64,000 nucleotides of DNA, from sequence record KJ019086.1; one strand, 5' to 3'. Position numbers and translations under genes: made by a program. Shown in pieces: positions 3,001 through 62,286 of the stretch. Below the pieces are notes generated by a model. It made no database searches, was not told where the DNA came from, and saw only the letters and a list, made by a program, of their open reading frames with translations. Positions within the stretch are counted from its first letter, which is position 1, and every line of letters starts with the position of its first letter.

Positions 3001-6000
3001 GGTGAAGGTGCTAGAATCAAACCAGTTATTGTTAATGGTAAGGTTACCACAGTTCAGATTCTAAGTAAGGGTATCAACTACCCACCCACACCAGATCTTC
3101 GTGTTATTGATAAGTCTCGTAAAGGTGCTGGTGCTCTTCTTCGCCCAGTAGTTATTGATGGTGCTATCCAGAGTGTTGTTGTTATTAGCACTGGTGAAAA
3201 CTATGATCCATTGAATACTGATATTACAGTAATTGATCCTGCTAGACGATGTATTCTTGTTCCTAGAATTACACCTCTCACAGTTAATACCTTTGCTAGA
3301 TTTGGATTCGAAGGTCTATCTAATAATGACTACTCGGTTGTTGCCTATGACAGAAAGATTCGTGAGGATGTATATGGTGACCTAGGTGCTTCCCACTCAC
3401 CCATCATTGGTTGGGCAAACGATGGTAACCCCATCTATGGTGGTTTTGGTTTCGATGATCCAGAGAACTCCAGTTCTGGTTTCCGGGCGATGAGAACTTC
3501 CTATGAACTCTTCCCTGGTGAGATCTATGGTCGTCCCCCACTAACACTATATCCTGCTGGTTCTTTTGTTGAGGACTACAAGTTTACAGATAATGGTGAT
3601 CTAGACATCTATAATGGTAGGTATGGTAGAACTCCTGAGTATCCTAATGGTGTGTATGCATACTTCGCTGGTATCTCCACTGATACTCAGTCACTAGCAA
3701 GAGAACCACAATTCCCTTACTTCATTGGTCCTGAGTTTAGGGATGGATTGGGTATTCAAGATAATACTGTATCCCAAGATTTTGATATTAATAATAAGGA
3801 TATTTTCCGTAATACTTTCCCATATGCCGTAGGTAACCCTATTATCGGCAGTGAGTTCCTAGATCAATCATACTTAGAGGATACTCAGGATTCTATTATA
3901 CAATCTATCAATAATGGTACTGTTGATAACTTAACCATCGTTGGTGCTGGTGTTAGTTACTCTGTTGGTGATATTGTTAATTTTGATGATACTTTCGACT
4001 ACATTAGTGTAGTTGTAGATCAGGTAGATGGTCCCGAGGTAACACAGATTCAAACTCTCATCAAGAGTTATGGTAAAGCAGAAACCAAAGTCATTAAAGT
4101 TGATAACACAACTGTTCGTGTTTATGTTGATCCCTTCCACGAGTATCTTGATGGAGATAAAGTTGTAATTAGTGGTCTATCAACAAACACAGATCAACTC
4201 AACGGGACTCATGAGATTAACTTCATGAGGGAGCAAATGACAATGTTTGCTCCTATTCCTCCTACTTTGTTTGAGACAGTATCTGATATCTTTGTCAATA
4301 CTATTTCAGATAAGGTTTCTGTTGGTTCTAGTATTACTGTTGGTCTTGGCACTCTATCGGAGGATATGGAAGTTATCAACATCTTCCCTATTAATAAGGC
4401 ACTTCGGGTTAAGAGACCAGTAGGTTATGGTTTCACACACCCAATTGGTGATGCTGTTAACATTGCTCCTAATTACTTTGATATTAAGAAGAATGTAGAT
4501 TCATTCCCGTCTGAGATTGATGTTGAGTACTACTTCAACCCACACCAAACAGTGGCAGTTGGATTGGAGACTGGTGCAAGTGTTGGTTTGGTGTATTCAA
4601 TTGGTACTATCGATAAGAATATCTCAGTACAGACTCAAAGAATATATGCACCATCCCATGGTTTCAGAACTGGTGAGGAGATTACTTTTGAGAAGAATGA
4701 TACTGATACTGCATTAGTTGTAACAGACGGTAGTACTGTATATACACTACCTGGTGTAGGTAATACAAGTAACGCATATGTTGTATCACTATCCAAAAAC
4801 TATATTGGTATTAGAACAGTAACAGATGGACCTGATTTATTCTTCTCTACTAATGGTTCCGATTCTCCTTTATATTCTATTAAGACTAATCGTTTCGCTG
4901 AGACTGCATTAGTAGATAGAATTCAGGCAGAAGTTAAAACGAAAACGGATCATAGGTTGGGGAATGACGATCAGATATTTACTGATGTTATTTCTTCTGG
5001 AAAATCAGGTGTAGGTACTAACCCCAACATCAAACTTGAGTTCGATGATTCATCACAATCACTTATTGTAGATCCATACTTCACACAACCTAGTGATATT
5101 GATACGGTTAATAACCTAATTAATATCAATAACCACGGTTATACTAATGGGGATATTGTTCTATATCAAAACTATGGAAGTTCTATTGGTGGTTTAACAA
5201 CTCATCACAAATATTACACTATTCCCTTTGATAGGGATAAGTTCTATGTTGCTGAAACATTTGTTGATGTAAGACCCGGAACTAAACTACCTGTGAATCT
5301 AACTTCTGTTGGTATTGGTTCCCATAAGTTCTCCAAGGTCAATCCACCACTACTCATCACTAATAATAATGATATTGAGTTTGATGTGTCATCACCAACT
5401 CTATTTGGTAAAACACTAGAATTCTTCTTTGATCGGACTCTAACTGAAATATTTGATAATAACAGTATAGACAATGTATTTGTTGTTTCTGGTGTATCTA
5501 CTGAGGGATACGAGGATGCTAGGAAGTCTATTAGATACTCTGATAACAATCCAGATGTATTCTTCTATGGTATTACTGAAGGTGGTTATATTTCCACTGC
5601 AGATACTGAAGTATCTAGAAACAACTCTATTAGATATGAGGCAAGTGAGTACGCAATTGAAGGTAGAGTAACCGTTATAGACGATAGCACCTTTACCTAT
5701 ACACTCAATACTATTCCCGAGAAGCCACTATACACTAATCCTGATACACAACTCTCATACAAGACTTCCTCTAGTACTGCTCTAGGTGGTGTTGGTAGAT
5801 TGAATATCATCTTCAGTGGTAATAACTTCCCAGCTCTACCTGAGTTTGAGGGTATTCAAACTGAGTATGGGCAGAACGCAACTATCAGAGCAGAGTCTGA
5901 TGATATTGGAACACTTGCTTCCTTCAGAATCCAGAACGCTGGTTGGGATTACTCCGCTGATAATACACTTCGCCCCTTTGGTGTTATTCAACCAACCATT

Positions 6001-58609: not shown

Positions 58610-58996
58610 ATGAACAATGATTATGATAGGGAACTTCCTTCCCCAACCGGATCTACGGGGGCAGTTGAACTAATGATTGAATCTATTGACCAGATGAGCA
58701 ACAATGATCCAGTAGTAAAACTAGTTCTACTGAAGAATAATGAAACTATTATTGCTGAGGTTCGTGAGAGTATCGATGGAAGTAGTGTTCAGCTCATTGA
58801 CCCTCGTGTAGTTCTACTACAGGCAGCAAGACCATCTGATGACGGACAGACCACAACAACTGCCATCTCATATACCGACTGGTTACCTTTGTCTGAGAGT
58901 AGAAACTTCACTATTGATGGTGATTATGTGGTCCTTATCACTGATCCCATTGAAAGTTTAGTACAAAGTTATACACAGGCACGACAAAATGGATGA
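58610..58996 (+). CDS. Conserved hypothetical protein with Sm-like fold (128 aa)
   Basis: VKLVLLKNNETIIAEV...VQLIDP...DWLP pattern; usual slot before gp43. Confidence 0.7.
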   Translation: MNNDYDRELPSPTGSTGAVELMIESIDQMSNNDPVVKLVLLKNNETIIAEVRESIDGSSVQLIDPRVVLLQAARPSDDGQTTTTAISYTDWLPLSESRNFTIDGDYVVLITDPIESLVQSYTQARQNG

Positions 58997-59270
58997 AACT
59001 ATTAGAGTATTGGTCTTGACCAATGGAAAAGTCCTTATCAGTAAGATCGAAGAGATAGGAGGTGCTGATATCGGGGAGCCAGACTGCCGTCTAACCGACC
59101 CAGTATGGTATAATGATGAGGTGGAGGAAATGACTGAAGGGTTCAAACGCTTTCCTGGTAAGGGGATCACACCCGATACCAAGTTGGCCATCTCTTCTGT
59201 CAATATCTTGACTCTGGTTACCCCAGATAATAAACTCCTCAGTGAATACCTCGTGTTTATTAGTGATTAA
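58989..59270 (+). CDS. Conserved hypothetical protein with Sm-like fold (93 aa)
   Basis: IRVLVLTNGKVLISKIEE...GEPDCRLTDP pattern; usual slot before gp43. Confidence 0.7.
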   Translation: MDETIRVLVLTNGKVLISKIEEIGGADIGEPDCRLTDPVWYNDEVEEMTEGFKRFPGKGITPDTKLAISSVNILTLVTPDNKLLSEYLVFISD

Positions 59271-60745
59271 TGTCTAACAAGTTCTACACCAATGTTCAGC
59301 TTTATGGTAACAACATCCTCCTACGCGGGTATGAGAACGGAGAGAAGTTTCACACTAGGGAACAATACTCTCCCACACTATATGTGAGTTCTAAGAAACC
59401 TAGTGAGTGGAAAACACTTACTGGTGAGAATGTTCAACCAGTGAAACCCGGATCTATTAGAGATTGTAGGGATTTTATCAAGAAGTATAAAGATGTAGAG
59501 AACTTTAATGTGTTTGGTAATGAGAGGTTTGCCTTTCAATACATTGCAGACAACTATCCTGGGGAGATTGAATATGATCCCCAGTTGATTAATATCTTGA
59601 GTTTGGATATTGAGGTTGAGTCTGAACATGGTTTCCCAGATCCAGAGTCTGCTAATGAGGAAGTACTACTCATTACTATTCAGGACTATGTTACCAAACA
59701 AATCATTACTTGGGGTCAGATAAAGCATGGGGAGTTTGATAACCAACAGGATAATGTAGATTTCCGTCCATGTGAGAGTGAGTATCACCTACTGAGTGCC
59801 TTTATTCAGTGGTGGCAACAGAACCCACCTGATGTTATCACTGGGTGGAACATTGACTATTATGATATTCCATACCTCGTCAGACGCATGAAGAGAGTGT
59901 TGGGTGATAAACTAGCAAGCACTATCTCCCCTTGGAAGTTCGTAACAGACGAAGAGCACTTCTTCAAGGGTATGAATAAACTATATTATAATATCGCTGG
60001 TATCACTCAACTAGACTACCTAGTTTTATACACTAAGTTCACATATACGAACCAAGAGTCATACAGACTAGACCACATTGCTAATGTGGAGTTGGGTCAG
60101 CAGAAGTTAGACCACTCTGAGTTTGAAACTTTCAAAGACTTCTACCGAAAAGGTTGGCAGAAGTTCGTAGAATATAACATCGTTGACGTGGAACTGGTTG
60201 ACAGGATGGAAGAGAAGTTGAAACTCATTGACCTTGCCATCACTATGGCGTTTGATGCCAAGGTTAACTTCCAGGATGTATTCTCACAGGTGAGACTATG
60301 GGATACTATTATCTATAACTATCTCAGGGATAGGAACATTGTTATCCCTCAGAAGGAACAGACTAGTAAGAGTGAGAAGTTCGCTGGAGCATATGTAAAA
60401 GAACCCAAACCCGGTCTATATGAATGGGTGGTGTCCTTTGACCTTAACTCCCTGTATCCTCACCTACTAATGCAATACAACATCTCTCCAGAAACATTGA
60501 TGGAAGAGAGGTGTCCTAATATCTCCATTGAAAAGGTTCTCAATGAAGAAGTAACCTTTGAGATGTATAAAGACTATGCTGTTTGTCCTAATGGGGCAAT
60601 GTATCGCAAAGATGTCCGCGGGTTCCTACCAACCCTAATGGAAAAGATGTATGATGAACGAAAGGCGTTCAAACAAAAGATGTTGAAGTCCAAACAAATC
60701 CTCGTTGATATCGAGGCTGAAATGAAAAGAAGAGGTGTATTATGA
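59270..60745 (+). CDS. gp43A: DNA polymerase gp43, N-terminal subunit (gp43A: exonuclease domain and palm motif A)
   Basis: ExoI LDIEVE, ExoII GWNIDYYDIPYL, ExoIII YNIVDV, motif A SFDLNSLYP; ends in the first fingers helix with TGA at 60743. Confidence 0.95.
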   Translation: MSNKFYTNVQLYGNNILLRGYENGEKFHTREQYSPTLYVSSKKPSEWKTLTGENVQPVKPGSIRDCRDFIKKYKDVENFNVFGNERFAFQYIADNYPGEIEYDPQLINILSLDIEVESEHGFPDPESANEEVLLITIQDYVTKQIITWGQIKHGEFDNQQDNVDFRPCESEYHLLSAFIQWWQQNPPDVITGWNIDYYDIPYLVRRMKRVLGDKLASTISPWKFVTDEEHFFKGMNKLYYNIAGITQLDYLVLYTKFTYTNQESYRLDHIANVELGQQKLDHSEFETFKDFYRKGWQKFVEYNIVDVELVDRMEEKLKLIDLAITMAFDAKVNFQDVFSQVRLWDTIIYNYLRDRNIVIPQKEQTSKSEKFAGAYVKEPKPGLYEWVVSFDLNSLYPHLLMQYNISPETLMEERCPNISIEKVLNEEVTFEMYKDYAVCPNGAMYRKDVRGFLPTLMEKMYDERKAFKQKMLKSKQILVDIEAEMKRRGVL

Positions 60746-60900
60746 GTTTTCGTCACAAAACATATGGTGGTCTAGTTCATTATGACCACAATGATAAGAT
60801 TATAGTCATTGAACGTCGATTGAATCCAATGCAACATCACGCTATGCTTGTGAGTAAGTTGAAGGAAGAGTATCCAGAGTATCAAGTAGTTACTGGATAG
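60742..60900 (+). CDS. Small hypothetical ORF inside the split gp43 locus (52 aa, not in ORF track)
   Basis: ATGA overlap with the gp43A stop and GAGG SD; MSFRHKTYGGLVHYDHNDKIIVIERRLNPMQHHAMLVSKLKEEYPEYQVVTG. Confidence 0.65.
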   Translation: MSFRHKTYGGLVHYDHNDKIIVIERRLNPMQHHAMLVSKLKEEYPEYQVVTG

Positions 60901-61115
60901 TGAGTGGTTTAGTTGCTGAGATTATGCAAGTCGTTACTATGATTACTATGCTATTCAATATGTGCAATAGTAATGAGTTCAACAGACAAGCATGTATGAA
61001 AGACTGGGATACTTGGTTATTACCTGAGATATCCCGTGCGTGGCAAATTAAAACAGGTCAGGAAGCCCCTTACCAAAACGAGGAAGATGTGGTAGAATGG
61101 CACCAACAGCAGTGA
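60900..61115 (+). CDS. Small hypothetical ORF inside the split gp43 locus (71 aa, hydrophobic N-terminus, two Cys)
   Basis: GTG start overlapping the previous TAG; fills the remaining gap. Confidence 0.6.
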   Translation: MSGLVAEIMQVVTMITMLFNMCNSNEFNRQACMKDWDTWLLPEISRAWQIKTGQEAPYQNEEDVVEWHQQQ

Positions 61116-61122
61116 GGTTCTT

Positions 61123-62286
61123 ATTGGTTATCTTATCGGTGGAGACTCTGAGGAGAAGCAGGAGGAGATCGTTCAGTCGGATAGTGACTATTCCAAACTA
61201 TCTGATAAACAACTGATCTATCTACGTGGGCAAACTATTAAAGATATTGCTAAGTTTTATAATTTTCAACAAGTAAGGAAAATTACTCTAAACTCCGCTT
61301 ATGGTGCTTTGGGTAACCAATACTTTAGATACTATAAACTGGCGAACGCAGAGGCAGTGACCTTCTCTGGTCAGTTAAGTATCCGTTGGATTGAGAATAA
61401 GATGAATGGATTCATCAATGAGATTCTAAAAACAGAGGGTAAGGATTATGTGATCGCCTCTGATACTGACTCTATCTACATTAACTTTGGTGATGTGGTA
61501 GATAAGTTCTTGAAGAAGTTTGATGGTGATAAGGAGAAGACTGTATCAATGGTAGATAAGATCTGTAAGGATCAACTAGAACCCTTCATTGATAAGTGTT
61601 ATGCTCATTTGGGTGAGTATGTGAATGCATATGAACAGAAGATGCAGATGAAGAGAGAGAATATTGCGGACAGGGGTATCTGGACAGCGAAGAAGAGATA
61701 TATCCTGAATGTATGGGATAGTGAGGGTGTTCGTTATGAGGAACCCAAACTGAAGATGATGGGTATCGAAGCAGTGAAGTCCTCCACACCTGCTCCCTGT
61801 AGAACTATGATTAAGGATGCTCTCCGTATTATCATTGAGAAATCTGAGGATGAAGTTATTGACTACATTGATGATTGTAGAAAGAAGTTTAAACAGATGA
61901 AACCAGAGGAGATTGCGTTTCCTCGTTCCGTTAGTGATATGATCAAGTTTCGTTCTGGGACAACAATATATGCTAAGAGTACTCCTATGCATGTGAGGGG
62001 AGCGTTACTATTCAATCATCACATTAAGAAGGGTGGGTTGGAGAACAAGTATTCTCTCATCAATAGTGGTGAGAAGATCAAGTTCTGCTACCTCAAGATT
62101 CCTAATCTAATTGGTGAGAATGTTATCTCATTCATCTCCGACTTTCCTAGGGAACTTAAGTTGGAGAAGTATGTTGATTATGATACCCAATTCAATAAAG
62201 CATTCCTAGATCCACTCAAGATCATCTTGGATGCTATTGGTTGGAACTGTGAGAAGCAGATGTCCTTGGAGTCATTTTTCACCTGA
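61123..62286 (+). CDS. gp43B: DNA polymerase gp43, C-terminal subunit (gp43B: motifs B and C, thumb); probable ATT start, 387 aa
   Basis: Frame open from the TAG at 61093; contains KITLNSAYG (61279-61305) upstream of the track's TTG, plus ASDTDSIY, KKRY and MGIEAVKSSTP. GAGG at 61114-17 precedes ATT 61123. Confidence 0.9.
   Translation: MGYLIGGDSEEKQEEIVQSDSDYSKLSDKQLIYLRGQTIKDIAKFYNFQQVRKITLNSAYGALGNQYFRYYKLANAEAVTFSGQLSIRWIENKMNGFINEILKTEGKDYVIASDTDSIYINFGDVVDKFLKKFDGDKEKTVSMVDKICKDQLEPFIDKCYAHLGEYVNAYEQKMQMKRENIADRGIWTAKKRYILNVWDSEGVRYEEPKLKMMGIEAVKSSTPAPCRTMIKDALRIIIEKSEDEVIDYIDDCRKKFKQMKPEEIAFPRSVSDMIKFRSGTTIYAKSTPMHVRGALLFNHHIKKGGLENKYSLINSGEKIKFCYLKIPNLIGENVISFISDFPRELKLEKYVDYDTQFNKAFLDPLKIILDAIGWNCEKQMSLESFFT

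Follow-up and report, generated by a model that had tools for sequence, protein, structure and literature searches.

Polymerase genes that are divided at the tip of the fingers domain are known from T4-related phages. A fingertip-split gene 43 (gp43) has been reported for the Aeromonas phages 25, 31, 44RR and 65 and for Acinetobacter phage 133 (Petrov et al. 2006, 2010, summarized in PMC3061061 and PMC2988022). The two genes are separated there by spacers of 2 bp to 3 kb, and the phage 25 halves are reported to co-purify and to have polymerising activity. Moreover, an artificial fingertip split of the Pfu polymerase was found to be fully active (Hansen et al. 2011, PMC3061061). In this study, the gp43 locus of Synechococcus phage ACG-2014f isolate Syn7803US17, a T4-like cyanomyovirus of the genus Atlauavirus (227 kb), was analyzed in a stretch of 64,000 nucleotides (nt) from record KJ019086.1, referred to as the window. 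Here, gp43 is represented by two cistrons, gp43A and gp43B, which are separated by 377 nt. Based on gene structure, conserved motifs, selection and distribution in relatives, gp43 of ACG-2014f is proposed to encode a two-subunit family-B DNA polymerase; a probability of roughly 85% is given to this reading, including the account of gene layout, translation start and shared origin of the split presented below.

Both cistrons are located adjacently on the same strand and together cover one gp43 (Table 1). Pfam assigned DNA_pol_B_exo1 and the DNA_pol_B profile positions 19-142 to gp43A, and the remainder of DNA_pol_B, from profile position 151, to gp43B. Alignments with the solved RB69 and T4 polymerases (E-values of 1e-66 to 1e-79) reached chain residue 490-493 with gp43A and covered RB69 residues 550-901 with gp43B, confident homology beginning at residue 550. 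Since A ends at about residue 493 and B starts at about residue 550 of the RB69/T4 chain, the break falls within the fingertip, between motifs A and B. Alignment with the single-chain enzymes of S-CAM7 and P-SSM2 also placed it between the fingers helices N and P. All motifs of the T4 gp43 type of family B are intact, with LDIEVESE and FDLNSLYP on gp43A, and KITLNSAYG and SDTDS on gp43B. The gp43A protein ends in ...KQILVDIEAEMKRRGVL, and the frame of gp43B (61096-62286) reads ...IGYLIGGDSEEKQ...KITLNSAYG. Furthermore, separate families for the two halves already exist in the PHROGs database, where gp43A matches phrog_2062 (502 positions) end to end and gp43B matches phrog_1918 (382 positions).

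Table 1. Features of the gp43 locus of ACG-2014f isolate Syn7803US17. Positions refer to the window, except for the last two rows, where they refer to the loci named.
Feature	Position	Strand	Description
gp43A	59270..60745	+	ORF (open reading frame), 491 amino acids (aa); N-terminal domain, 3'-5' exonuclease, palm motif A, fingers helix N
Palm motif A, FDLNSLYP	60437-60460	+	on gp43A
A tail	60698..60742	+	gp43A residues 477-491, ILVDIEAEMKRRGVL; 15 aa; C-terminal extension of helix N
ORF166	60742..60900	+	52 aa, phrog_3538; start overlaps gp43A stop (ATGA)
ORF167	60900..61115	+	71 aa, phrog_3571 and phrog_703 (8e-9); GTG start overlaps ORF166 stop (TAGTG)
Putative gp43B initiation region	61108..61125	+	TGA 61113-61115, GAGGT 61114-61118, ATT 61123-61125
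gp43B	61123..62286	+	387 aa when counted from ATT 61123 (frame open from 61096); carries motif B in fingers helix P, motif C in the palm, the thumb and the C-terminal tail
B leader	61123..61245	+	gp43B residues 1-41: GYLIGG, variable acidic linker, conserved DYSKLSDxQLxxLR core
Motif B, KITLNSAYG	61279-61305	+	on gp43B
TTG 61309	61309..61311	+	GenBank gp43B start; located after NSAYGA of motif B
Palm motif C, DTDS	61462-61473	+	on gp43B
ORF167 relative (phrog_703), S-IOM18 (L021)	3408-3614		after mazG
ORF167 relative (phrog_703), Syn1 (L022)	3408-3605		after mazG

The layout resembles that of the recognized split enzymes. The Aeromonas and Acinetobacter systems share with ACG-2014f two cistrons on one strand, a break between helices N and P, an intercistronic distance varying from a few bases to kilobases, and a junction that differs among relatives. 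The break position was compared directly with Aeromonas phage vB_AdhaM_G2 (PQ066597.1), phages 25, 44RR and 133 being considered by their description only. This phage encodes halves of 506 and 391 aa that overlap by ATGA, with no genes between them. A MAFFT alignment placed the last residue of both gp43A proteins, that of the window and that of vB_AdhaM_G2, in one common column 28 aa past the invariant Arg of helix N, showing that the break is homologous in position to that of a recognized split gp43. The B leader of vB_AdhaM_G2 has the pattern xTDxxLxxL in common with LSDKQLIYL of ACG-2014f; however, identity in the tail and leader regions is only about 35%, and both GYLIGG and the acidic linker are missing from the Aeromonas protein. 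The original prediction, which was made from the sequence alone, had placed the split at the fingertip, with motif A before and motif B after it, had likened it to that of the Aeromonas and Acinetobacter phages, and had given a combined length of 878 aa compared with roughly 830 aa for single-chain cyanophage enzymes. All of this was borne out (491 + 387 = 878 aa, in comparison to 831 aa for P-SSM2), and its readings of the gp43A end and of gp43B agree with the ORF translations.

In other respects, ACG-2014f differs from the Aeromonas and Acinetobacter phages. Its hosts are marine cyanobacteria, it has tail and leader motifs of its own (LVDIEAEMKRRG; GYLIGG with an acidic linker), and the isolate analyzed is devoid of a canonical gp43B start. 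Moreover, the junction contains small ORFs, and purM or purS in relatives, instead of the seg-type endonuclease or untranslated spacer of the former systems. The engineered split Pfu polymerase, likewise of family B, was divided close to the fingertip, is translated by coupling from an AUGA overlap, and assembles without added domains; in contrast to the natural forms, it is artificial and has its cut inside helix O, the archaeal fingertip being very short (PMC3061061). The split of gp43 is not peculiar to ACG-2014f, but of a known kind that is common in ocean phages. To this known kind, the present locus and its relatives add that the split is abundant among marine phages, that its junction is used as a site for cargo, and that gp43B of this isolate is devoid of a canonical start.

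For the proposed enzyme, gp43A would provide the N-terminal domain, the proofreading exonuclease, motif A and helix N, and gp43B would add helix P, motifs B and C, the thumb and the C-terminal tail. Because palm and fingers elements are divided over A and B, the active site and the nucleotide-binding fingers would exist solely in the A-B complex. The genes gp43A, ORF166, ORF167 and gp43B are most likely co-transcribed and translated by coupling, since they are located on one strand, their stops and starts overlap or nearly abut, and no terminator was found on the plus strand between gp43A and gp43B. Sigma-70-like promoter matches within the gap were at chance level (12 found versus 10.5 expected).

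A split gp43 was present in all 45 ACG-2014f records covering the locus. These represent independently sequenced isolates with identities of 95.6-100%, which excludes an assembly artefact as origin of the split. Polymorphism was evaluated for 14 isolates, namely the window and 13 further ACG-2014f loci. The ratio of non-synonymous to synonymous polymorphism (pN/pS) was 0.025 for gp43A, 0.037 for the gp43B body, 0.13 for ORF167 (polymorphisms by codon position 7/3/16) and 0.18 for the B leader (61117-61308; 38 of 56 polymorphisms in third position), indicating purifying selection on all four segments. In their alternative frames, pN/pS values were near or above 1 and stops were present. Low values in the own frame only imply that all four segments are coding and that gp43B is translated from at least 61117-61123. 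Both cistrons are thus maintained by selection, and neither has the appearance of a pseudogene.

These results also bear on the possibility that gp43B is decaying after loss of its start codon, or that the split is a sequencing or assembly artefact. The lack of ATG, GTG and TTG before motif B and the truncated gp43B in GenBank could be taken in this sense. However, the same state recurs across many independently sequenced cultured isolates, leader and body of gp43B are under strong purifying selection, and the motifs are intact throughout. In addition, gp43 is the sole replicative polymerase gene of T4-type phages. Decay or artefact is hence scarcely credible.

Variation is distributed unevenly along the locus. 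The A tail and ORF166 (60684-60925) contain four variable sites in 240 nt, and ORF166 has two polymorphic sites in 156 nt. In contrast, the B leader is hypervariable (56 variable sites in 192 nt), with synonymous polymorphism (pS) of 0.38 in the 61130-61300 region versus about 0.1 in the flanks, and its acidic stretch occurs in three distinct alleles among the isolates. This pattern suggests a local sweep for the invariant A tail and ORF166, and allele exchange for the hypervariable B leader.

Introns, inteins and a 50-nt translational bypass are known in replication genes of T4-type phages. It was considered whether a single gp43 chain could be restored, be it through a group I intron, long-range translational bypass, or an intein in complete or split form. 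The fractured genes reported from marine metagenomes (Dassa et al. 2009, PMC2677866) resemble the present case in that cyanophage-like replication genes occur in two pieces with an intervening gene. Their halves, however, are ligated by split inteins and accompanied by an endonuclease gene, whereas gp43 of ACG-2014f has no intein and its halves would remain separate. Rfam did not detect an intron in the region 60300-61600, even at E <= 10. Pfam showed only polymerase domains on gp43A and gp43B, and detected neither an intein nor a homing endonuclease on these two, on ORF166 and ORF167, or on nine ORFs from the junctions of relatives. At 15 aa, the tail is much too small to be an intein half, as is the leader at 41 aa. 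Moreover, the interval encodes two proteins under purifying selection, its frames hold stops, and 44 of 79 related loci have nothing removable between the halves. Restoration of a single chain is thus very improbable.

The start of gp43B deserves particular consideration, since no ATG, GTG or TTG occurs in its frame before TTG 61309 in the window. A protein begun at this TTG would be devoid of the Lys, Asn and Tyr residues of motif B, and because of its location at this motif the codon is very unlikely to be the real start. Most likely, gp43B begins at ATT 61123, seven bases past the ORF167 stop, either by weak direct initiation or by re-initiation of ribosomes terminating on ORF167. This assignment is favoured because the homologous codon of environmental relatives, which begin with M-GYLIGG, is ATG, because a Shine-Dalgarno-like GAGGT overlapping the ORF167 stop is in place, because the approximately 65 nt upstream (61050-61116) are nearly invariant among isolates, and because the surrounding RNA is unstructured (z = +1.5). 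In 83 related loci, the codon homologous to 61123 was ATG in 67 and GTG in three, while eight have ATT, their start lying five codons upstream; ATG was also found in the environmental proteins P0002, P0005, P0016 and P0035. Among the 14 isolates, four have GTG at 61117 and one has TTG at 61132, while the remaining nine lack a canonical start upstream of helix P and carry ATT (eight) or ATC (one) at 61123. The gp43B of L054, an ACG-2014f-like IMG/VR locus, is likewise without a canonical start. The gp43B leader (61117-61308) is unannotated in 14 GenBank records, where the gene is called from TTG 61309; other ACG-2014f records call it from GTG 61117, TTG 61132 or GTG 61273, the gene being the same throughout.

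Alternatively, ribosomes translating ORF167 could shift by +1 or make a short hop at its stop and so enter gp43B, which would yield an ORF167-gp43B fusion of approximately 460 aa. The gp43B frame overlaps the last 20 nt of ORF167, a canonical start is missing in nine of the 14 isolates, and GTT/GTG at 61117 behaves as a synonymous site, all of which would fit such an entry. The same applies to the last approximately 65 nt of ORF167, which are nearly invariant and are retained in L054 (last ~65-70 nt) despite one internal deletion in its ORF167. However, the frames of L054 differ from those of the window, so that one shift rule cannot serve both. Furthermore, no slippery or re-pairing sequence is present at CAG-TGA, and most split loci do not contain ORF167 at all. 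Independent initiation appears to be the norm of the family, given GTG in four isolates and ATG with a good Shine-Dalgarno sequence in most relatives. Only a slim chance is thus assigned to the fusion, and initiation at ATT 61123 is preferred.

The distribution of the split was examined in protein and virus collections. A search with gp43B returned 7,685 proteins at E <= 1e-10; among the best 120 of these, nearly all are 384-392 aa long and mostly show 70-75% identity at near-full coverage, several being called as complete genes. The gp43A search yielded many proteins of 487-491 aa beside single chains of 831-835 aa at similar identity. Environmental proteins of 386-392 aa that represent the split form number in the thousands. 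One 191-kb contig (L023) encodes gp43A (487 aa), a 65-aa ORF and gp43B (387 aa) within the usual replication-gene neighbourhood. An IMG/VR scan with the B leader identified 80 loci, 79 of them with both halves. In 44 of the 79, the gp43A stop and the gp43B ATG share one base with nothing between the halves, and the Shine-Dalgarno sequence for gp43B is encoded by K(K/R)RG codons of the A tail. In the remaining 35, the gap measures 70-1528 nt. It contains a member of the ORF166 family in 11 loci of several lineages, a member of an unrelated 45-81 aa family (the same as the 65-aa ORF of L023) in nine, PurM (AIR synthase) in eight and PurS in two. Pfam results for junction ORFs of relatives were confined to PurM, PurS, weak matches to HhH-GPD or CapR, or no assignment. 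Metabolic genes at the junction were noted in the uncultured IMG/VR relatives L075, L077, L079, L081, L082, L087, L089, L092 and L051, with purM in eight loci, purS in L092 and L051, and the weak HhH-GPD match in L089.

Cultured and assembled cyanophages show both forms of the gene. Makaravirus members (S-H34, S-N03, MC09 and others) encode gp43A (488 aa), an ORF167 homologue and gp43B (366 aa). They share the A tail of ACG-2014f, but have a short B leader without GYLIGG. The gp43 of cultured S-CAM7 is a single chain, while in an S-CAM7-like contig of 224 kb (L107) gp43 is split and the gap holds an ORF166 homologue. The homology between the two (71%, including a shared insertion of 29 aa) ends exactly at the KQ preceding the tail. 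In a neighbour-joining tree of the N-terminal 466 aa of gp43 (25 split and 94 single-chain sequences, no bootstrap support), split forms are intermingled with continuous ones, which amounts to at least seven state changes. Exchange of the fingertip by recombination, or repeated loss of the split, would account for this pattern, which is suggestive only. No paper describing a split of cyanophage gp43 was found in the literature searched; in S-CREM2, the annotation reads 'DNA polymerase subunit B'. In the metagenome-assembled metaG-MbCM1 (NC_019443.1), gp43 is annotated as four coding sequences, and UvsX and Hsp20 as two each. Unlike the fingertip split, these pieces look like frameshift errors or decay.

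According to the favoured explanation, the split is old and shared, its basic form would be A and B abutting with a one-base overlap, and the junction would later have served as an ordinary intergenic site taking up small and metabolic genes, here ORF166 and ORF167. Another possible origin is a homing-endonuclease-type element that created the split, with ORF166 and ORF167 as its remnants and tail and leader as element-derived assembly domains. A precedent exists in NrdA-a/NrdA-b of phage Aeh1 (Friedrich et al. 2007; Crona et al. 2011, PMC3045599; see also PMC2988022), an essential phage enzyme that likewise reassembles from two pieces and for which terminal extensions at the break were proposed to drive assembly. 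There, however, the break was caused by the recognizable homing endonuclease mobE, from which the interaction domains are derived, and no endonuclease is detectable at gp43. Junction contents varying by lineage, the interspersed tree and the occurrence of an S-CAM7-like backbone in both forms would agree with a mobile origin. On the other hand, no endonuclease domain of the mobE or seg type was present in any junction ORF tested, the commonest split form carries no insert, the divergence of the ORF166 family is not younger than that of the flanking polymerase but tracks it, and the leader core resembles its RB69 and Aeromonas counterparts and hence looks ancestral, not imported. Creation of the split by such an element is therefore regarded as unlikely compared with an old and shared split.

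A more far-reaching reading regards cyanomyovirus gp43 as two ancient fingertip alleles, one continuous and short, the other split and long, which have been swapped across lineages by recombination. In addition, the split junction would be a dedicated cargo site (ORF166 family, ORF167, purM, purS), gp43B of many ACG-2014f isolates would be translated from ATT or ATC by coupling to the upstream small gene, and ORF166-family proteins could be functional partners of the split enzyme instead of passengers. Taken jointly, these proposals are possible but rather doubtful.

Both small genes between gp43A and gp43B are conserved; they were not mentioned in the original prediction. Pfam found no domain in either. 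The ATG of ORF166 is preceded by AGAGGT, so that the last codons of the A tail double as its ribosome-binding site. Homologues of ORF166 occur at the junction of the 11 loci and of L107 mentioned above, and the Makaravirus homologue is located elsewhere, outside the gp43A/B junction. Recent mobile spread of ORF166 was considered and rejected, since between lineages it has diverged in step with the flanking gp43. One allele replacement forms an exception: the ORF166 proteins of the window and L054 are only 60% identical, although the flanking gp43 shows 98-99%. ORF167 encodes a hydrophobic N-terminus and two conserved Cys residues. A homologue with 38% identity is located between gp43A and gp43B of S-H34, and an IMG/VR scan with ORF167 returned solely ACG-2014f itself. 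Distant relatives of ORF167 (phrog_703) share the pattern C...C...WL.PE...G..TPYQNE and are normally encoded directly after mazG in the replication cluster, outside gp43. An inverted repeat of 5 bp around a loop of 7 nt (CCTCG...CGAGG, 60700-60716) lies in the A-tail codons, 26 nt before the ORF166 start, within the stretch that is invariant among isolates; it is not present in L027. Directly upstream of gp43A (58610-59270), two adjoining paralogous small genes were noticed (phrog_431/483; DUF6561 in relatives), the second of which overlaps the gp43A start by one base.

The A tail is conserved in three lineages and in the 79 loci. Folded alone, gp43A was modelled with one continuous helix (452-487) running through the tail at a predicted local distance difference test (pLDDT) score of 70-80. 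For gp43B folded alone, residues 1-22 were without secondary structure and a helix at 28-65 was obtained at low confidence, in which the conserved leader core would prolong helix P. In an alignment of 119 environmental B proteins, I5, G6, G7, D22, L31, L34, Q37, T38 and K40 are invariant, and GYLIGG (61123-61143) is invariant or nearly so. GYLIGG and the acidic linker are absent from the B halves of Makaravirus (S-H34), the S-CAM7-like contig and vB_AdhaM_G2. Among isolates, no part varies more than the acidic stretch (B residues 8-22), in which relatives have Gly/Pro. A segment that is variable, bears Gly/Pro and is absent from three split lineages cannot be a general zipper and is dispensable.

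The original prediction had proposed that an acidic leader (LSDKQLIYLR) and a basic tail, both amphipathic helices, form an intermolecular coiled coil. Contrary to this description, the net charge is 0 for the A tail and +1 for LSDKQLIYLRGQ, i.e., the quoted leader stretch plus GQ. Hydrophobic moments of the A tail and the leader core did not exceed those of shuffled sequences, a weak measure given that the undisputed helix P core also scored low. A special zipper, amphipathic or charge-complementary, is thus not supported. What stands of the coiled-coil idea is the predicted helicity of the A tail and, weakly, of the leader core (DYSKLSDxQL...). Extended fingers helices are plausible from the models, and the hydrophobic spacing of conserved positions (L478, I481 and M485 of A; L26, L31, L34, T38 and I42 of B) would be compatible with two helices packed as a longer fingers hairpin. 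The assumption of extra helix in both halves holds in comparison to short-tip cyanophage enzymes, but not to RB69, where 56 aa lie between the same anchor points versus 57 aa in tail plus leader; the hairpin would thus have about the length of RB69's own fingertip. The idea that tail and leader are duplicates of one ancestral segment was dropped, as matches were too short. The example of the split Pfu enzyme, together with the native fold, shows that the large interfaces of palm, fingers and N-domain are enough for assembly.

Some points weigh against the proposed two-subunit enzyme and the start assigned to its second half. The proposal presumes that gp43A binds to gp43B and that the two are made in comparable amounts, and the models of the single halves have low overall confidence (pLDDT of 62 and 67). 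Moreover, ATT normally is a very weak start codon, and the isolate of the RefSeq genome even has ATC at 61123, again without a canonical start. Since GTT/GTG at 61117 would be synonymous if this codon is translated internally, frame entry further upstream is conceivable.

Studies of marine T4-like phages commonly rely on gp43 as a phylogenetic marker and as a PCR target, and its annotation is automatic. Where the gene comes in two parts, as it frequently does, the second half is mis-started or left unannotated, which affects gene calling as well as core-gene counts and surveys based on marker genes. Furthermore, a metabolic gene inserted at the junction can come to lie within an apparent single gene. 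Regarding translation, ACG-2014f offers a natural example of an essential gene that lacks a canonical start codon. For enzymology, the marine phages hold a large natural series of fingertip-split family-B polymerases which differ in their tails, leaders and spacers.

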